NCBI GenBank assembly: GCA_001643675.2
Contig: LSRY02000037.1
Location: 1 to 64,000 of the forward strand
Direction: 5' to 3'
Origin: Monocercomonoides exilis PA203
Lineage: Eukaryota; Protista; Preaxostyla
Length of the DNA stretch: 64,000 nucleotides
Shown here: piece after piece, positions 10,201 to 41,862 of the stretch
How positions within the stretch are numbered: position 1 is the stretch's first letter
Layout of the letters: every line of letters begins with the position of its first letter
The notes under the pieces: model-generated
Databases searched by the model: none
Seen by the model: the letters and a program-made list of their open reading frames with translations, nothing else
What the model was told of the DNA's origin: nothing
Translations under genes and position numbers: made by a program

Positions 10201-12587
10201 AGCACACACCCCACAAAAACAGCATTCATTCATTCATTCATTCAACCAATCACAACATTTTGGTGAATAAACACATGCACAGTTGAAGAGATGAAGAATT
10301 CACAATTCAATATGAAATTGAAAATGAATAAAAAAAAAAGGAAAGGAAAGGAAAGGAAAGGAAAAGGAAAAGAAAGATAGATGATGGATATGAAAATTGA
10401 ATAGTTCTTAATGAAAGAGGAAGAGAGAGAGAGAAAGAAAGAAATGCATCACCTTCAGATATGGTTCCAGTTTGCCTCCTTCCATAAACGTAATCGGCGA
10501 GTCTGTCGAAAACGCACGCACCATCTGCAGCACATCGCAGATGATGCGCACAGGCGTGGGGATTGGCGCCTGCGACGTGGTTGTCACGTAGGTCGGGTTC
10601 GCAAACGGCAGCAGCAAGTCAATCAGCTGCGACACTTCGCTGAACAAGCCACGCAAAATAAATCATCATTCCCCAAAAACAAAAACAAAAAATAAAATTA
10701 AAATAAAACCAAAAGATCTGTGCACACTTCTTCGTAAACTGCGATTTGATGATTTTCTCGTTGTCTTCAATGAGAACTGAAAGACACTTCGCTGCTCCTT
10801 CTGCAAACGTTTTCATGTCTCCCTTTTTCGTCACCTCCAGCAGCTGCCCAATCAACGGAAGCAGCTGCACATATCCTGAAAGGCAAAAGCAAAAGCAAAA
10901 ACAAAAGCAAAAAGAAAAATGAAAATGAATAAAGAAAGAAAAGAAAGAAAAGAAAGAAAGAAAGAAAAGAAAGAAAAGAAAGAAAGAAAGAAAAGAAAGA
11001 AAAGAAAGAAAAGAAAGAAAAGAAAGAAAAGAAAGAAAAGAAAGAAAAGAAAGAAAAGAAAGAAAAGAAAGAAAAGAAAGAAAAGAAAGAAAAGAAAGAA
11101 AAGAAAGAAAAGAAAGAAAAGAAAGAAAAGAAAGAAAAGAAAAAAAGAAAGAAAAGAAAGAAAAGAAAGAAAAGAAAGAAAAGAAAGAAAAGAAAGAAAA
11201 GAAAGAAAAGAAAGAAAAGAAAGAAAAGAAAGAAAAGATAGAAAAGAAAGAAAAGAAAGAAAAGAAAGAAAAGAAAGAAAAGAAAGAAAAGATAGAAAAG
11301 AAAGAAAAGAAAGAAAAGAAAGAAAAGAAAGAAAAGAAAGAAAAGAAAGAAAAGAAAGAAAAGAAAGAAAAGAAAGAAAAGAAAGAAAAGAAAGAAAAGA
11401 AAGAAAAGAAAGAAAAGAAAAAAAAGAAAGAAAAGAAAGAAAAGAAAGAAAAGATAGAAAAGAAAGAAAAGAAAGAAAGAAAGAAAAGAAAGAAAAGAAA
11501 GAAAAGAAAGAAAAGAAAGAAAAGAAAGAAAAGAAAGAAAAGAAAGAAAAGAAAGAAAAGAAAGAAAAGAAAGAAAAGAAAGAAAAGAAAGAAAAGAAAG
11601 AAAAGAAAGAAAAGAAAGAAAAGAAAGAAAAGAAAGAAAAGAAAAAAAGAAAGAAAAGAAAGAAAAGAAAGAAAAGATAGAAAAGAAAGAAAAGAAAGAA
11701 AAGAAAGAAAAGAAAGAAAAGAAAGAAAAGAAAGAAAAGAAAGAAAAGAAAGAAAAGAAAGAAAAGAAAGAAAAGAAAGAAAAGAAAGAAAAGAAAGAAA
11801 AGAAAGAAAAGAAAGAAAAGAAAGAAAAGAAAGAAAAGAAAGAAAAGAAAGAAAAGATAGAAAAGAAAGAAAAGAAAGAAAAGAAAGAAAAGAAAGAAAA
11901 GAAAGAAAAGAAAGAAAAGAAAGAAAAGAAAAAAAGAAAGAAAAGAAAGAAAAGAAAGAAAAGATAGAAAAGAAAGAAAAGAAAGAAAGAAAGAAAAGAA
12001 AGAAAAGAAAGAAAAGAAAGAAAAGAAAGAAAAGAAAGAAAAGAAAGAAAAGAAAGAAAAGAAAGAAAAGAAAGAAAAGAAAGAAAAGAAAAAAAAGAAA
12101 GAAAAGAAAGAAAAGAAAAGGCAAACCTCTTTTAACAAATGAAGAAATCAGAGATGCCAGCGTAGATCGCAGCACCGAGTTCTCATCCCCAATACACCCC
12201 AACACTTGTCGAAAAACTTCATTTTTCATTTCTTCTGAAAAATGATAATTCTTATCTTCAACAACTTGTTTCAAGAAAGTGACCGCGTACTGCCGGTGGT
12301 AGAACACCAGTGACTTGTCGCAAATAACCGCCGCAAGATACACCGGGTAGTTCGGCACAGCCTTCGCGTATTCTTTCAGTTTCTAAATCCCAAATCATTG
12401 TTCACATCAACAAACATCTCAACAATCAGCCGGCACCACAAAAGCGGGCGCCAGCCTGTGTGCATACGCTCTCCGACGTGTTCACCAGCCCGTTCGCCTC
12501 CTTCGAGAAGTTCACCACCGTCTGCTTTATTTCTTCATAAGCCGAAGGATTTATCTGGCTCTTGCTGCGCAGCGACGCCCCAACCAT
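7248..12587 (-). CDS. TNPO1: Transportin-1 / importin beta-2 (karyopherin beta2), multi-exon
   Basis: Exons match recalled transportin motifs: acidic H8 loop then TPRKNCGNAFELLS (cf. NLRKCSAAALDVLA), WLERESAVF, DKHPLIRMICHWALGRYARW (cf. [20 protein letters not shown]), NKQVQRSAC, AFDKYQKRN. GC-rich exons are separated by AT-rich GT-AG introns. Start codon approximate. Confidence 0.85.
10931..12120. repeat. ~1.2-kb (AAAAGAAAG)n polypurine minisatellite inside the transportin intron 10876-12126
   Basis: Directly visible 9-bp unit with occasional GATAG and A-run variants. Confidence 0.95.
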
Positions 12588-32489: not shown

Positions 32490-32787
32490 CTAAAGAAGAG
32501 TGGGTGAGGAAGGTTTCATGAAAGAGGAAGAAGAAGAGGGAGAAGAAGAGGAAGAAGGAGAAAGAGAAGAAGAGGAAGGAGAGGAAGAAGAAGAAGAAGA
32601 AGAAGAAGAAAGAGAAGAAGATTTTCTATGTTTGTGTCTTTTGTGATTATAATGTCTATGATGATTTCTCTTCTTCTCTTCATCATCATCATCATCTTCT
32701 TCTTCTTCTTCTTCTCTTCTATTACTTTCAGATTCTGAGGTTGTGTCAACAAGAATGAAAGAGGAAGAGGAAGAAGAACTGATTGAA

Positions 32788-32819
<32 letters not shown>

Positions 32820-33165
32820 AAGAGAAGAAGATGATGATGATGAAATTTCATCTTCATCTTCATCTTCATTATTTATTTTCTTCTTTTTCTCTTTCACTTT
32901 CTTCTTCTTCTCTTTGTCCTCCTTCTCTTTTTCTTTCTCCTTCTCCTTCTCTTTCTTCTCCTTCTCTATCTTTTCTCTGTGTGAATGTGAATGTGAATGA
33001 AGATGAGTGTTTTTGTGTCTGCCTCGAAAGGGAGGAATAACCAGCTGCTGCGGAGAAATGTGGAATGTGACATGAGGATGAGAAGAGGGAGGAGAGGGAG
33101 AAGGAGAAGAGGAAGAGGAGGAGGAGGAAGAGGGAGATGATGATGATGATGAAGAGGAGGAGGAG

Positions 33166-33197
<32 letters not shown>

Positions 33198-33408
33198 GGA
33201 AGAGGAAGAAAAAGGTGGAGGATGAGAGGAAGGAGAAGGAAGAGAGGGAAAGGGAGAAGGAGAAGGAGAAGAGGAAGAAGAAGAAGAGGAAGATGTTGTG
33301 ATTTCAATTGGAGATGAAGAAGAATAAGCATAAGTTTCACTCTTGTAAGGAGGAGGAGAAATATGATGAAGTGGATCAGATGATATGTTGTGTGGTGAAT
33401 GAGAAGAA

Positions 33409-33440
<32 letters not shown>

Positions 33441-34124
33441 AGAGGAGGAAGAAGAAGAAGGGGAGGAGGAAGAAGAAGGGGAGGAGGAAGAGGAAGAGGA
33501 GGAGGAAGAGGAGGAAGAAGAGGAAGAAAGAGAAGAAGAAGGTTGAGAAAGAAGAACGTTGTGTGGTGAATGAGATGTTTGAAGTGATTGTGAATGAATA
33601 GAATGCGAAAGAGGAGGAGAAGAAGAAATTGAAGAGGAAGAGTGAGAGGAAGATGAAGATGTTGATTGAGGAAATGGTGAATGGGAAGAAGAAAAGGAAG
33701 AGGAAGAGAAGGAAGAAGAAGAAAGAGAAGAGGAAGACGAGGAAGAAGAAGAAGAAGAAAGCAATTTTTGGAAAGATTTTTCGACAGATTTTCCATCTTC
33801 ATCGACAATCACAAAAAGATAAGTGTCATCTTCTGCATTTGAAGAAGAAGAGGGAAAAGAAGAGGAAGAGGAAGAAGAAGAAGGAAAGGAAGAAGGAAAA
33901 GAAGAGGAGGAAGAGGAAAAAGAAGAAGACAACAAACAATTATTGTTTGTTTCTTCATTCTTCTTTTCCATTTGAGAAGAAGAATTTTCATCAAAACTGT
34001 TGTGAAGATTGGGAGAAGGCAAAAGTTTCAATGCAATTGGAGCAGAAAGGAAAGGTTTAGAGGGAGGAGGAAGAGAAGAAGAAGAAGAAGAAGAAGAAAA
34101 GGGAGAAGATGGAGAAGAGGGAAG

Positions 34125-34157
<33 letters not shown>

Positions 34158-37100
34158 AGAAATTGAAGAAGCAGGAAGAGGAGGAGGAAAAGAAGGAGAA
34201 GCATGACTAAAGGAAGGGAGAGTTATATTAGAAGAAGAAGAGGAGGAGGAGGAGGAAGAAGAAGAGGAAGATGGCAGCAAAGAATTTGTTGCTATTGTGA
34301 AAGAAGAAGAAGAAGGAAAAGAAATGTTTGAAGAAGAAGAAGAAGAGAAAGAGGAGAAAGAGGAGAAAGAGGAGGAAGAGGAGGAAGAAGAAGAAGGAAA
34401 TGAAGAAGAGGAAGAAGAAGAAGAAGGAAGAGGAGGGCGTGGAATGAAGAAATCAACAGGAGCTGTTGAAGAAGCAATCGAAGTGTTTTGTGTGAGAGAA
34501 AGAGGAGGAATAAAAGAAGAAGAGGAGGAAGAAGAGGAAGAAGAAGGAAAAGAAGAAGAAGAAGAAGAAGCAATTAAATTAGAAGAAGAAGTATTAGAAG
34601 AAGCAGAAGAAGAGAAGAAGACAGGAGCAAGCGGAGAAGGTTTGAATGTAGTGCGGGACAAACCAGCCTCTTTCGCATAGTCAAAAGCAGACGCCTCGAA
34701 TTTTGCTCTTCTTTTCATCGCTCTTTCCCTCCTCCTCTCCAAATCCCATGCAAATTCATCGTCATCATCATCATCTTCTTCTTCTTCCTCTTCCTCTTCC
34801 TCTTCCTCTTCGATTTCTTCTTCTTCTCCTTCTTTCCCCTTCTTCTTCATTCTTCTTCTTCTTCTTCCCTTTCCATCATCACCATCATCATCTTCTTCTT
34901 CCTCCTCCTCAGCATCATTTTCATGTTTTTTGCTTCCACTTCTGCTTTTATTCACGCTTTTGTTCTTCCTCACAATTCTTGACTGCGTCAAAGACAAGCC
35001 AAAAATTCTTCTTTTCATCTTTTCGTTCTCTTCATACAACGACTGCACACGATTATGTGGAACTCTTTTGACATTCATGTTGCTTTTCTTCTTTTTCTTC
35101 TTCTTCTTCTTCTCTTTCTCTTTCTTCGCTTCATTATCTTCATTGTCATCTTCTTCTCCTTCTCTTTCTCTCTTTTTCTCTTTCTCTTTTTCTTTATGTT
35201 GTTTCTTCCCTTCACTTTGCTCGTTTTTGCTATGTTTGTGACTTTTTTCCTTCTTTTTCACAATTTCTTCTTCTTCTTCTTCTTCTTCTTCTTTCTTCAT
35301 CATCCTCTTCTTTTCTTTTTCTTTTTCTTTTTCTTTTTCTTCCTTCTCCTTCTCTTCCTTCTCCCTCTTCCTCCTCCTCTTCTCCTCTTTCTCCTTCTCC
35401 TTCTCCCTTCTCCTTAATATTTCTTTGTCTTCCTCTATCACTTTCATCATCTTCTCTTTCTCTCTCTTCAATTGCTCTTTCACTTCTTCATATTTCTTTT
35501 CTTCCACATTCACACACAAATCTTCTGCTGCTAATTTGATTCTAAAATTCTTAACTCCTTTTTTCTTCTCTTCTTCTCTTTCTCCTCTTTCTCTTTCTCT
35601 TTCTCTTTCTCTTTCTCTTTCTCTTTCTCTTTCTCTTTCTCTTTCTCTTTCTCTTTCTCTTTCTCTTTCTCTTTCTTTCTCCTTTTCCTTCTCTTTCTCT
35701 CTCTCCTTCTCTTTCAGCTTCGCTTCTTCTTTCTTTTTGATAGCCAAGTCAAACAAATCGTCTTCTTCGGGAAACAAATTCGGCTCTTTTGGACGGAAAG
35801 GCGCAATTTCTGTGACAGACACAGGGAGAAGAAGATGTTTAGAGGAAGAAGAAGAAGAAGAAGAAGAAGAAGAAGAGGTAATTCCAATAGCTTGTTCTGT
35901 ATTCACAGTTTCTCCTTCTCCTCTTTTTGTTGTTTTTATTTCTTTTCCTCCTTTTGCGCTGTTACTTTTGCTTTTGCTTTTACTCTCACTTTTTCTTTGA
36001 CTTTGACTTTGACTTTTCTCGCTTCTTCTGCTTGTTTCATTCGCTCCTTCCTTCTTTCTCGAAGGAAACAGATTCTCCAACACCACTTCTGTTACGTCGC
36101 TCTCCACACTCAACGAACACACCGACGTTTCTCCGCTGCTACTGCTGATACTACTGCTTCTTCTTCTTTTTCCCCCTCCTCCTTTTTCTTCTTCTTCTCC
36201 TCCTCCTCCTCTCCTTCTCCTCTCTTGTTCTCTTTCTCTTTCATTTTCTCTTCTATGCGAATGATTATGTTGTCTTCTTCCTGTTTTTTCTTTTTCTTTA
36301 TCATTTTCATCATCATCATCATCATCAACCGGTTTCCTTCTCACACTCATCAACATCAGCTGCCTCTCCCTCTCTGCTTTCGCCTTCTCTGTTATCATCA
36401 TCCTCCCTCCTCTTCCCTCTCTCCTTTCTCTCCCTTCTCCTCCTCTTTCCTTCTCATCTCTTCTTCTCTCTCCTCCTTCACTTCCTCCTCCTCCTTCTTC
36501 TTCTCTTCCTCCATAACTCGAACTGCTTGATGTTGATAGAGGTCTCAGTGCCATCCTCGATGAATCAGAGCCTGGCGAATACACGGCAGGAGACGAAGGC
36601 GCAGGGATATATCTTCCTTGTCTCCCCAATCGATGCTTCAAAGCAGCAGCAGAAGAAGAAGAAGAGGAAGAAGAAGATGAAGAAGAGTAAGGAGAAGCAG
36701 ACCAATCATAAACAGAGTCAAATTCGTAGCCCTCACGTGTGAATAAGTCGTGGAACATCTTTCGGAGGAAACTGTAGTCGGGCTTGGCGTCGAAGCGGAG
36801 GTCTGAGGATGGAGGAGAAGAGGTTGGTGAATGAGATGGAGGTGAAATAAAAAGAAAAAAATTTTCAATAAAAAAAAAAAAGAAATGAAATGATATTAAA
36901 AATGAAGAATAGTTGAGGAAACGGAAATGATAAATGAAAAATAATTTTGAATAAAATAGGAAATAAGAAAGAAAGAATTGGATTTTCAAGTTTATCAGAA
37001 GAAAATGACAAATGAAAAATGAATTCATCACACCTCGAATATATTTGAGATAAACAGAAAATTCAGTTGGTAAGTTTTTGCAGAGGATATCAACTGGGAT

Positions 37101-37850
37101 GGTCATTTTCATATCTCCTATTTTCATGTACTTCTCTGTTTTTGTGTGTGCTTTCACACCCATCCATGGCAACTGCCCCACGAGAAAATACACAAACATA
37201 TAGCCAATTGACTCCAAATCATCGCGTCTTGATTGTTCAATTCCTATATGAGTATTGACGCTAGTGTAACGAATTGTTCCTGTGATTCCTTTTGTTTCTC
37301 GATAAGGGATGTGCTTTTTTGTTTTTGAATCTCGAAATTTTTTTGCAAGTCCAAGATCAATCAAATACACCATATGGTCATTTTTTCCTCTTCCAATAAG
37401 AAAATTATCGGGCTTTATATCTCTGTGAATATAATTCCGCGAATGAAGATATTCTATTCGCGCCAAAAACTGCTCAGCAAGCATTAATGTTGTTTTTAAA
37501 CTAAATCGACGTCCGCATTTATTAAAAACATCTTCCAGGCTGGACCCCAAATAATCCATAATCATAACATTATACCCTCCTTCCTTTCCAAGCCACCGAA
37601 TTCGAGGAATTCCTACACCTCCCTGTAATGCTCTATAAACTTTTGCCTCGAAAAATAGTAGTCCTTGTCTTCCATCAGCAGGTTCGACTTTCGCTGCTAT
37701 TTCCTCTTTTGTTGATATTACAATTCCTTTAAAGATAGTTCCAAACGCTCCTGCACCAACTTTTTTATTTGTTGTAAGTCGAAATGTGTTGGCAATTGTC
37801 CATTCTCCAGAATCAGGAAATCCTTCTCCGGGAGAAGATGCCTTGGACAT
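32490..37850 (-). CDS. CK1: Casein kinase 1 family kinase with ~1400-aa low-complexity C-terminal tail; intron 36803-37033
   Basis: GAGAFG, IHRDIKPDNFL, IDLGLAK, GTIRYTSVNTH, EQSRRDDLES. Splicing 37033-36803 restores YIRDLRFDAKPDY. Extent of the tail is less certain than the kinase domain. Confidence 0.92.
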
Positions 37851-38034: not shown

Positions 38035-41000
38035 ATGAAGGTTATGATCAATAATACTATGTTATTGCTTTTTCTTGTTATAGCAGTTGAAGGTTGAGTT
38101 ATTTCCTATAGATATATTTAAAATTTAATTTTTATTTTTAAAGTCAAATCTCAAGATGAGAATACTTATCCCGATCATTTTGATTTGAGAAATATATATC
38201 CACATTGTTATTCACTTAATATGCCTTCATATACTGGTATCAAATAAATTTTTTGTTATAAATAAATATTCATTTTATTATTTTGTGATATTGTACATTT
38301 TTTTTGGAACGTAAATTTCAAGGAAACTGTCATTCATCATGGGCTTTTGCTACGATTGGTGCAATATCTGATAGAATGTGCAGTTTGCTTTTTTATTTTA
38401 AAAGCTTAATTGTGAAATTTCTTTGGATATAACTTGATGTTAAGTTCAAGGTGTTACAAATCAATTCATGTCTGTTGAAGATGTTATTCAATGCGATACA
38501 ACGAGCGACGGATGCAATATAGGATATCTAGCGAACTCCCTTGAATTTTTCAGGCAGCGACGTTTGTAATTTTATTTCATCCTTCATTATTTTTATGCTT
38601 TCTTTTTTTATTTTTTTTTATTTTTTTATTTTGAATGAATTGGAAAAAAATATTTGATGGATATGTACTTTGTCGAATAGAATTAGGATTAGTAGTTCCA
38701 GCGGTGTGCAAGAAATACAAAGGAACTTCGATGAGAAGATGTCAAGATGAATGCGATAAAGACAGTCCTGTTTCCATGGTCTGGTACTTTTTTTGAACTA
38801 TCAAATAATTGTTGAAGTGATTTTTTCTTATTAATTTTTCATGCTTTGAATAAACATTTGTGCATCACAGAAGTACGGGCAGCAATATTATTTGTCCTTT
38901 GAGACAGGCTCGCAGACCATCAACCTGGACAAAACTTATTACAAAATTCCCTCCTTGGTGAAGTTCAAAGAAGAAGAGAACAAAAAGCTTATCTCAGAAA
39001 ATCCATTCAAGGTGCTTTTCAAAGGAGAAAGACACGACCCACTTGACGAGTCATTTTTTGTTTGTGCTTCTTCTTTTTGGACTGAAATTAATGATTGTTA
39101 ATTAACTTCTTTTTTCTTTGATTAAAATTAAATCATTTTCCAACAATATTGCAAATATTAATCAATTGTTCTTTGATATTCTCAAATGTGAATGACCAAT
39201 CTTCAGGAAGAGTATCGCTTGAAAATAATGGATGAAATCATGAATCCAAACAACGGAACAGTCATAGCCAGTTTTAGGGTGTGTTTCGCATTTATTGAAC
39301 AATTTGCTTAATATTTTCATTTAATAATCTTTCTCATTATAATGTTATTATCATTGTTTATTTCAATTTTATAAATGAAATGTTATATTATGAAAAAAAA
39401 TTCAATTTCTTTTTCACTTTTCATTCAATAATTCCCCCACAAAAAGCTCTACAAAGAATTCCTCTCCTTCTTCCGGAACGAAAAAACCAAACACAAAATC
39501 TTCTCCTCAAAAGCTGTCGATGTGTCCAATGAAGGATCTTTCCTCCACTATTCACACTGCAAAATCATCGGCTTCGGAAAAGGTGACCCCAGCGATGCAG
39601 AAGGGAATGACGCCACAGACGCTCATTTCATCAGTGATGACAATGCATACAAGTATTCAAAGGGGTATTGGCTGTGCCAGTGGTTCGAGATGGACTTCGA
39701 AGACGCATACAGCGCAGATGAGGTGTTTAGAGCTAACAATTCATACACACGAAGAGAGATCTTCAAGGACTACACCAGCAAGCGCGAGGAGAAGATGGCT
39801 CAGCTGACTCGGCTGCACTACACCAGCGAAGACGGCGTGAAGTACCGAAAGGGATACTTCCGCGTCGTCTTCAACGACACCAAAATCAGATTAGAAGACG
39901 ACGTGTGGGGGGTGACTGTGAGGAGCCTGGAGCAGTACGGACTGCCTGACGAGACAGCCTGCAGAAATGTGAACAATCCGGAGCCTCGTTTTGACGACAT
40001 CAAATCACAGAGAAGATACTCCACGCTACTGGGCACGACTGACGGATTCTGTCAGACGTGCGTGGGGTCGGAGCCTGCTGCAGCGAGGGGGAGTAATAGC
40101 AACAATGTGTCTACTTCCTCCTCTTCCTCTTCATCATCATCCAATTCTTCATCCTCTCCTTCTTTTCACTCCTCCTCCTCGGCCTTCAACCGCTGTGCCT
40201 TTTGCCAGTCCACCCACCAGTGCATAGCAGTCTCAAAGGAAAGCCCATCCAGCCCATGTCTCGGCGCCTGCGAAGACATCATCGCCAGTGGCTGCCCTGT
40301 CAATCCATGTCGCCCTCTGTCCCATCTGCCTCACTTGTGTGCTGCTCAAAGCGGCTGTGGCTACTGTGCATCGACGGGTGAGTGCCTGAAGATCGACGAT
40401 GCTTCGCTCCACCGCCACTTTTTCCTGCAGGGTGAGTACACAAAGAACGACAGCACTACACATGTGAGCGAGCTGACCACGTTCAACCGTCTGGTCAACT
40501 CAGCCAATTCGCACTACGCCAGCCGCGTTGTGCCGCCCGAGCAGAGCTCAACAGCTGGAGATTACTGCCCTGTGCTGTTGAGGACACGATATGAAGCTGA
40601 GCATTCATTCCCGTGTCTCACACACAGCACGAAGGATGACTGTTTGGCAAGTGAAGGAGGCAACTGCGGGTGGTGCACTGAGACTGCGCAGTGTCTGCCA
40701 ATCAATCCTGATCTCAATGGGAGTTTGAATGCAGAGCAGCAGAAGCTTCCCTATCAGCCTCTGATTGGGCGCTGCCGATCGAAGCACTTTCTGATCAACG
40801 GGACAGTCGTAAAGCCAGCCGAAGAGCCAGCCAGCTGTGCAGCAAGACTGACGCCTGCAGCTTGTGTCACGCCTGAAGCGATGAATGGAGAAGGAGGTTT
40901 CTGCAAAGCAGCGGCAATGAGATCGAATGAGCTGTCGTGCTATTGGGATTACAAGCAGCACACGTGCAAGGAATGCGATGGAAACACACCAGAAGATATG

Positions 41001-41756
41001 AGAAAGCAGTACAACTATGCTGCAGAAGAGGACTTCTGCTCAGCGATGGATGTGACAGCCTGCCAGCGGCACTTCGATTTGAAGGGTGATGTCAGATGTT
41101 CGTGGTGCGAAGACAGAGAGGCGTGTGTGGCTGTCCGGAATGACACAAACAATCAGATCCATCCTGTTCTGATGGGATGTGCGCGCCTGCAGAGAGAGAA
41201 AGAGGTGCATGTGCATTCGGACTGCACTTCGAGGGTGTCGTGCACATCGTGCTTGAGGCAGAGTGGCTGTGCGTGGAATGCAAATGGCAGGATGTGTGTG
41301 GACAGACAACAATCAGGGCAGTCGATGCAGTCAAAGAAGGCGAGGAATGTGAAAGGAGAAGAGGGTGAAAGAGAAGGAAAAGAAGGGTTTGAGTATTCAG
41401 AGCTGTATAGAAGGATGCATCACACTTCACATTCATCATCATCTTCTTCTTCTTCTTCTCAAAATACAGATAACTCTACTAACTTCTCTGATCAATCATC
41501 TTTCTCCTTCCCTTCTTCTTCTTCTTCTTCTTCTTCTTCTTCCAATGACGATCTGATCGTTTCCTATGCGCACTGCCCGCACCGTGTGGGTGATCCTGCG
41601 TTCTCCCCTGTGGATGTGCTGATGTCATCCATCGAAGCGAAAAGAGCACAAATGAGTGGAGCTTTCTTTGACAGAAGAATGAATGGGTGGAAGGGGATGG
41701 TGATGGCTGTGGGTTCTCTTGTGATATCTTTGTTTGGAGCAGCTGCTTTGTTTTGA
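38035..41756 (+). CDS. Secreted or surface cathepsin-B-like (papain C1A fold) pseudo-protease fused to PSI-like Cys repeats and a C-terminal hydrophobic anchor; about 8 exons
   Basis: Small exons missed by the ORF track translate to a signal peptide, YPDHFDLRNIYPHC, TGNCHSSWAFATIGAISDRMC, MSVEDVIQCDTTSDGCNIGY, IMDEIMNPNNGTVIASFR. The last exon gives HYSHCKIIGFG, YWLCQW, KGYFRV, then CGYC/CGWC/CSWC/CAW repeats and MVMAVGSLVISLFGAAALF-stop. Confidence 0.8.
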
Positions 41757-41788
41757 GATTGAAGAGGGGGAAAACAAGAAAGATGGTG

Positions 41789-41862
41789 AAAGAGAAAGAG
41801 AAAGAGAAAGAGAAAGAGAAAGAGAAAGAGAAAGAGAAAGAGAAAGAGAAAGAGAAAGAGAA
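41789..41862. repeat. (AAAGAG)n microsatellite in the 3' flank
   Basis: Directly visible hexamer array. Confidence 0.9.

Follow-up and report, generated by a model that had tools for sequence, protein, structure and literature searches.

MONOS_12729 of Monocercomonoides exilis encodes a cathepsin B homolog without catalytic residues, with a PSI-type stalk and a putative membrane anchor

Inactive papain-fold proteins and MONOS_12729

TINAG and TINAGL1 are animal cathepsin-B-like matricellular proteins that carry Ser at the nucleophile position, act as extracellular non-catalytic binders and are fused to Cys-rich modules; in TINAG these extra modules are N-terminal, the protein is secreted, not anchored, and the other active-site residues are kept. 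MONOS_12729 is a gene of the oxymonad Monocercomonoides exilis PA203 (Preaxostyla) and lies in the 64,000-nucleotide window analyzed here (assembly GCA_001643675.2, contig LSRY02000037.1, positions 1 to 64,000 of the forward strand). Unlike TINAG, its product has C-terminal PSI repeats and a predicted anchor signal, and no N-terminal module was found with Pfam. Since the protein falls inside a Preaxostyla-specific group in our tree, its origin is independent of that of TINAG and the resemblance is convergent.

Plasmodium SERA5 (PDB 2wbf, 3ch2, 6x42) is likewise of papain fold and has Ser for the nucleophile, but it keeps His and Asn, belongs to another family branch, has neither a PSI stalk nor an anchor, and appeared only at Foldseek ranks 44-48, below cathepsin B, when the head of the M. 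exilis protein was the query. TrCB1.5 and TrCB1.6 of Trichobilharzia regenti (PMC7054455) are, like MONOS_12729, expressed cathepsin B paralogs with a replaced nucleophile that occur beside active isoforms. However, each is a soluble zymogen of one domain that has both propeptide and occluding loop and lacks only the Cys, whereas MONOS_12729 has lost all four residues and has a stalk and a putative anchor. Such inactive cathepsin B paralogs of flukes have been proposed as regulators or decoys. The C-x-W-C cysteine pattern of the stalk is common to the PSI domains (PF01437) of plexins, semaphorins and integrins. In contrast to those proteins, MONOS_12729 has a stalk of six tandem Cys modules under a protease-fold head, with no sema or IPT domain, and four of the six stay below the profile cut-off.

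The closest relatives with an intact triad are found in Preaxostyla (P0006, the contig 16 paralog, P0004, P0007, P0054, P0294). They share with MONOS_12729 the signal peptide without a propeptide, the head without an occluding loop, a collinear six-module Cys stalk, a C-P motif, a small triplet and a terminal hydrophobic tail. These active relatives keep Gln, Cys, His and Asn, whereas the dead lineage, formed by MONOS_12729 and two orthologs, is without all four, evolves faster and is interrupted by large insertions near the His and Asn strands and within PSI module 1. The two active paralogs of M. exilis and the two dead orthologs are:

contig 13, L022:1663-3612: active paralog P0006 / MONOS_12277, "cathepsin B1", 685 amino acids
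contig 16, L021: 7138-7629 and 5628-7166, reverse strand: active paralog, triad intact
Blattamonas nauphoetae BLNAU_9419: dead ortholog P0002, 844 amino acids
Streblomastix strix KAA6392706.1: dead ortholog P0003, 1531 amino acids

The following sections establish how MONOS_12729 is built and that it is expressed, which fold its product has, that the catalytic residues are gone, that the stalk is collinear with that of the active paralogs, and that the protein is of ancient origin and has been retained. We infer, with fair probability, that the product is a secreted, most likely glycosylphosphatidylinositol (GPI)-anchored pseudoprotease with a non-catalytic role at the cell surface.

Catalytic residues, fold and gene structure

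The large terminal exon of MONOS_12729 is 100% identical to a single database protein (KAH7819475.1, 990 amino acids, referred to as P0001), which GenBank names "putative papain family cysteine protease" and whose record carries precomputed matches to PF00112 and PF01437. P0001 was the query with which cathepsin-B-like proteins were recovered, and the resulting set of 74 aligned rows is hence query-biased. In this alignment the column of the oxyanion Gln, which holds Gln in 56 of the 74 sequences, has Thr42 in P0001 (ACT, 38233-35), and the nucleophile column, with Cys in 49 of 74, has Ser48 (TCA, 38337-39). At the catalytic His column, where 53 of 74 have His, stands Ser257 (codons of S257/H258 at 39552-57). 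The two downstream motifs are:

39546..39578, forward strand: motif H-Y-S-H-C-K-I-I-G-F-G, with Ser257 at the catalytic His column and His258 one place on, as placed by the alignments
39666..39683, forward strand: motif Y-W-L-C-Q-W, the Asn strand minus the Asn and the next Ser; a strand at residues 294-299 in the AlphaFold model

Where P0001 has YWLCQW, paralogs of M. exilis have YWLCQNSW, and all other paralogs fetched from this organism retain CGSCW, H-A and NSW. MAFFT gave three placements of this region, and the catalytic Asn column contains no Asn under any of them; the alternative placements of the strand (NSW-shifted, LHYTSED) are disfavoured by the paralog sequence YWLCQNSW and the model strand at 294-299. 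At the Gln, Cys, His and Asn positions, the residues are T/S/S/- in M. exilis, A/T/S/V in Blattamonas and F/S/E/A in Streblomastix, and the residue after the His position is H in Blattamonas (S then H) and A in Streblomastix (E then A).

An earlier note on this DNA had read T-G-N-C-H-S-S-W-A-F with Thr for the oxyanion Gln and Ser for the nucleophile, a Ser at the His position with the His shifted by one, and an Asn lost from YWLCQW. The codon map, the alignments, the paralog consensus and the model strand bear out this reading, and by alignment with active relatives all four catalytic positions are lost. Across the 74 cathepsin-B-like proteins, the nucleophile column holds Ser in 14 and Gly in 4; despite the query bias of the set, this count shows dead homologs of cathepsin B of the Ser type to be common among public sequences.

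The Pfam profile Peptidase_C1 (PF00112) matched P0001 with 59.9 bits against a gathering score of 20.7 (E 4.8e-16), at residues 21-134 only; the R-domain stays unaligned by this profile through excess divergence or interruption. An AlphaFold model of the head (residues 1-420, input alignment of 74 rows) had a mean predicted local distance difference test (pLDDT) score of 70.7 with a core above 90, and low confidence at residues 144-178, 272-292 and 301-347. The top 33 Foldseek rows obtained with this model were cathepsin B or procathepsin B, with E values down to 5.8e-13 and template modelling (TM) scores by target of 0.73-0.75 for the cathepsin B matches, and cathepsins C, L, K and S, falcipain and SERA5 took lower ranks. 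A comparison of the family profile with PDB sequences returned the matches in the same order. Solved cathepsin B has a long insertion relative to the family profile, the occluding loop, whereas the Cys111-Cys126 segment of P0001 is short; the loop with its His-His pair, the exopeptidase signature of cathepsin B, is found neither in P0001 nor in the active PSI-bearing relatives. By these comparisons, P0001 is a homolog from the cathepsin B branch of Peptidase C1A, though not a working member of it. The cathepsin B fold proposed in the earlier note therefore agrees with both the Peptidase_C1 match and the closeness of the modelled head to cathepsin B, and the PSI profile matched as well.

A Pfam search of P0001 for an N-terminal propeptide (Propeptide_C1 / I29) found none, and the mature domain starts at residue 21, right after the signal-like segment. 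A divergent neighbour gene starts at 37850, ~200 bp from the MONOS_12729 start codon, leaving no room for a propeptide exon upstream. Active papain-family enzymes normally need a propeptide for folding and latency, and propeptide-less active ones are unusual. The active PSI paralogs and their relatives in Blattamonas, Paratrimastix and Trimastix have no propeptide either, and their mature domain also directly follows the signal peptide.

The translation of an eight-exon chain equals P0001 exactly, with GT..AG at every intron; a start at the in-frame ATG at 38035 instead would lengthen the protein by 8 residues. Evidence from RNA consisted of contigs from four RNA sequencing runs of one study, compared with the window outside repeats, which left out intron 1 and two poly-Ser stretches. 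The exons and the first intron are:

38059..38092, forward strand: exon 1, which carries the start codon of the annotation and encodes an N-terminus that is hydrophobic and signal-peptide-like; translation matches P0001
38093-38143, forward strand: intron 1, a repeat outside the RNA comparison, placed by the annotation alone
38144..38236, forward strand: exon 2, mature N-terminus of the C1A head; RNA contig at 38150-38235, joint to exon 3 in runs X1 and X3
38323..38382, forward strand: exon 3, with the motif G-N-C-H-S-S-W-A-F; RNA contigs of four runs with identical letters
38445..38561, forward strand: exon 4, part of the L-domain including G-C-N-I-G-Y; joints 38382/38445 and 38561/38681 in four runs
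38681..38778, forward strand: exon 5, the short Cys111-Cys122-Cys126 segment at the position of the cathepsin B occluding loop; RNA joints
38871..39059, forward strand: exon 6, mainly an M. exilis-specific insertion (~residues 135-195), predicted disordered; joint 39059/39207 in four runs
39207..39278, forward strand: exon 7, the conserved R-domain strand N-G-x-V-x-A-S-F; RNA joints
39447..41756, forward strand: exon 8, with the rest of the head, the PSI-like stalk, Ser-rich linkers, the predicted anchor signal and the stop codon at 41754-56; also seen as an open reading frame

The joints of introns 3-7 are present in RNA contigs of all four runs and that of intron 2 in two (X1, X3), and a single 2661-nt contig reaches from 38150 to 41424. 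Exon 8 is covered at 39446-41424 and at 41553-41778, the latter extending beyond the stop codon. There were zero letter differences between the contigs and the window. Since the introns are spliced out, the contigs derive from RNA and not from contaminating DNA. The RNA thus joins exons 2 to 8, which supports the earlier proposal that the upstream small exons and the large terminal exon form one gene; it also reads TCA at 38337-38339, and the reading frame is intact over the eight exons and 990 codons of the spliced transcript. A manual splice made at first in this analysis, with acceptors at 38451 and 38687 and a short exon 6, was rejected, since the RNA joints give 38445 and 38681, 6 nt upstream, and the long exon 6. 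Among the small exons taken singly, exon 4 matched Peptidase_C1 (E 0.0031) and the others gave practically nothing in Pfam. The insertion in exon 6 has pLDDT values below 50 at residues 144-178, and this segment is not in the orthologs by alignment.

The divergent neighbour (32490-37850, reverse strand) encodes a casein-kinase-1-like Ser/Thr kinase, whose open frame continues with over 1400 residues of low complexity (poly-Ser, Glu/Lys and Arg/Glu); a Phe/Leu-rich stretch within its kinase domain resembles an intron read through in frame. On the other side, a (GAGAAA)n microsatellite occupies 41790-41860, ~35 nt past the MONOS_12729 stop codon, and the RNA contigs stop at 41778, just short of it. 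Elsewhere in the window, a purine-only satellite of more than 1.1 kb (~10940-12100, unit GAAAGAAAA) has a GC skew of 1.0 and an AT skew of 0.985.

Lineage, stalk and C-terminal signal

Searching the M. exilis genome with the head identified ~35 papain-family places besides the gene's own exons, which fits the 44 paralogs of cathepsin B that have been reported from M. exilis, an unexplained expansion in a commensal (PMC6759080). Two of the paralogs have the same head, six-module Cys stalk and hydrophobic tail with the triad intact. Active PSI-bearing versions were also found in Blattamonas (P0004, P0007), Paratrimastix (P0054, "cathepsin B20") and Trimastix (P0294) and on two metagenome contigs, and within the searches made none was seen outside Preaxostyla. 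The architecture, which the earlier note did not recognise, is thus neither unrecognised nor unique: both Pfam domains were already annotated, the same build occurs twice more in M. exilis, and active versions exist in the three other genera. A HMMER search of 1.8 billion representatives returned three proteins at E <=1e-30, namely P0001, P0002 and P0003. The gene model of Streblomastix P0003 has an extension at residues 1-430 before the signal-peptide-like segment, and probably represents two genes merged in a fragmented assembly.

Two other triad-intact cathepsin B paralogs of M. exilis have a Pro-rich linker and, at the C-terminus, another kind of domain with ~10 cysteines and no Pfam match; they constitute a second class of extended cathepsin B in this organism:

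L010:1222-2838 (contig 5:876494-876853 region): extended paralog
L008 (contig 45:282276-282668 region): extended paralog

By eye, the C-terminal Cys-rich domain of L010 had been taken for Frizzled-like, a candidate that was dropped when Pfam gave no match.

In a careful tree of 24 rows, the three dead proteins form one clade (ultrafast bootstrap 99, SH-like approximate likelihood ratio test (SH-aLRT) 97) that was recovered in 200/200 bootstrap trees and, like the active PSI-bearing clades, is nested in a Preaxostyla group. This tree does not settle which lineage is its sister; a quick tree of 74 rows places it beside the oxymonad active clade (SH-aLRT 95). All three dead proteins are identical at 34 family-wide positions, including 8 cysteines. 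Since the same four residues are lost in three orthologs of one clade, the loss is old and the protein has been retained. The structural cysteines, which the earlier note had described as kept, are indeed present in head and stalk of the orthologs of three genera.

From residue 385 to the end, P0001 is collinear with the active paralogs, with 41 invariant alignment columns, 31 of which are Cys. The features of the stalk region are:

39960..41318, forward strand: Cys-rich stalk with six modules (residues 393-845), which aligns collinearly to that of the active paralogs
40116..40157, forward strand: poly-Ser run (residues 445-458) inside a bigger insertion that splits the first PSI-like module
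41433..41546, forward strand: mucin-like linker rich in Ser (residues 884-921) that leads from the stalk to the conserved C-P motif

Over the whole of P0001, the PSI profile (PF01437) scored 32.2 bits against a cut-off of 23.1 (E 1.4e-7). On their own, module 3 (residues 611-639, 26.3 bits) and module 6 (813-846, 24.4 bits) passed this cut-off, module 5 was weak and below it (14.2 bits), and single searches of modules 1, 2 and 4 gave no PSI match. Modules 1 and 2 were recognised solely through their counterparts in P0006, which scored 22.3 bits, just below the cut-off, and 12.2 bits. Of the earlier claim of about six CxxC...CxWC...C PSI modules, the six Cys modules can be delimited; their assignment as PSI holds above the cut-off for two of them alone. 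The Blattamonas ortholog has an insertion at the same site of PSI module 1.

The C-terminus carries the following feature:

41655..41753, forward strand: GPI-signal-like C-terminus, with S-G-A (958-960), then a spacer of 11 residues and, as the last part of the protein, a hydrophobic tail of 19 (972-990)

In P0001, the only hydrophobic window with a Kyte-Doolittle value above 1.5 is 969-990. The same triplet, spacer and tail are also present in P0002, P0004, P0006, P0007, P0054 and P0164; in these seven family members S-G-A, E-G-A or V-G-A stands 9-17 residues ahead of the hydrophobic tail, and no cytosolic tail follows. To judge from the primary structure, this layout is that of a GPI-attachment signal. 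The M. exilis genome encodes GPI8/PIG-K, with a transamidase match of E 4.9e-57 as compared to 4.7e-23 for legumain, and PIG-A, PIG-W and PIG-M were found as well. Each of these last three has two loci on separate contigs (PIG-A, C54:343558 / C10:551555; PIG-W, C15:1148901 / C64:162393; PIG-M, C23:690822 / C11:728937), which suggests duplicated GPI-pathway genes or duplicated assembly regions.

A plain membrane-spanning anchor, or residence in lysosome-like or phagosomal membranes instead of the surface, is an alternative that we consider doubtful. With its 19 residues the tail could span a membrane, cathepsins are classically lysosomal, and Gaa1 and PIG-T were not found (controls blank too). 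However, a cytosolic tail is entirely lacking, the small triplet ahead of the tail is conserved in the seven family members, and the genome encodes GPI8, PIG-A, PIG-W and PIG-M. Since the GPI transamidase is encoded, a GPI anchor appears more likely than a transmembrane helix for the MONOS_12729 protein. Where the earlier note had left the terminal hydrophobic stretch as a membrane or GPI anchor, a signal of the GPI type is retained and a membrane-spanning helix with a cytosolic tail is not.

Possible roles of a non-cutting papain fold

MONOS_12729 would have originated as a duplicate of an active cathepsin-B-PSI-anchor enzyme, an architecture common to Preaxostyla, and Gln, Cys, His and Asn would have been lost in the copy before Monocercomonoides, Blattamonas and Streblomastix split. 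Its product would consist of a signal peptide without a propeptide, a cathepsin-B-fold head incapable of cysteine-protease chemistry, a stalk in which Ser-rich linkers accompany six disulfide modules of PSI type, and a C-terminal GPI-attachment signal. It would reside at the cell surface, or in phagosome membranes derived from it, beside the two active paralogs, and its head would be a non-catalytic binding or adhesive device kept away from the membrane by the stalk. From this build we infer a role as a non-catalytic surface binder or regulator. More specifically, it may be a dedicated oxymonad surface pseudo-cathepsin whose head has been reused as a recognition module for bacteria or host-gut material, or for the control of co-anchored active cathepsins, a proposal that we regard as tentative.

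Several results weigh against a binding head on an anchored stalk. The Gly-Gly backbone-binding motif is I-G in P0001 and E-G in the Blattamonas ortholog, and two of the three orthologs (Blattamonas and Streblomastix) no longer have the Trp that follows the Asn position, so that the canonical substrate cleft looks degraded at the level of its motifs; any binding would therefore probably not be substrate-like. Core identity among the dead orthologs is 36-41%, compared to 50-52% for active orthologs of the same species pair, indicating that the dead head evolves faster than active heads. The model of the stalk is poor (mean pLDDT 56.9, five helix-plus-hairpin units), and with this model Foldseek gave no match at E <=0.001, the weak rows being mostly plexin/semaphorin PSI. 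In addition, Gaa1 and PIG-T were not detected in the M. exilis genome search, which left the control genomes blank too.

The main rival to the binding-head reading is that the dead head is a regulator or decoy and not an adhesin, which pairs with the co-anchored active paralogs or soaks up cystatin-type inhibitors. Because their stalk and tail are the same as its own, the two active paralogs would share its location, and in vitro binding of cystatin is on record for an inactive cathepsin B1 paralog of a schistosome, in which Gly replaces Cys29 (PMC7054455). However, cystatin binding uses the active-site cleft, the motifs of which are not conserved among the three dead orthologs, and we hold this explanation to be unlikely.

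It is much less probable that MONOS_12729 is a decaying, functionless duplicate that is still transcribed by chance. Faster evolution, three large low-complexity insertions and poly-Ser expansions would fit such a decay, but the frame is intact over eight exons and 990 codons, the transcript is spliced, and three genera have kept orthologs in which every structural cysteine of head and stalk is present. Least credible of all is that the protein is still a hydrolase, a serine-type papain-fold enzyme with Ser48 as the nucleophile and the shifted His258 as the base: although M. exilis has Ser at the nucleophile position and shares the H-Y-S-H motif, with a His one residue past the canonical one, with Blattamonas, such an alternative Ser/His dyad seems unlikely because the nucleophile is Thr in Blattamonas and the shifted His is missing in Streblomastix, and the oxyanion Gln and the Asn are gone in all three orthologs.

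A non-catalytic binding head on a stalk is the reading that we prefer. The gene and both of its Pfam domains were already public; what is added here is the dead state, its age and retention over three genera, the family context and the GPI-type tail. A literature search found no paper naming MONOS_12729 or a C1A-PSI architecture, the supplements of the genome paper being outside that search. If the protein is a surface recognition pseudo-cathepsin, no receptor-like pseudoprotease would have been described in metamonads before it, and it would parallel animal TINAG with an origin of its own. As it stands, the protein is a pseudoenzyme of modest interest, the inactive sister to working enzymes that have the same build, and not a new kind of protein, and its public label "cysteine protease" is misleading for counts of the protease repertoire.

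Part of the cathepsin B expansion of M. exilis is a Preaxostyla-specific class of putatively anchored, stalked, propeptide-free proteins, one branch of which gave up catalysis long ago and yet was kept. With two active enzymes and a dead one built on a common scaffold, M. exilis provides a natural matched set, suited to asking what a non-cutting papain fold does and how cathepsins without a propeptide fold and are controlled.

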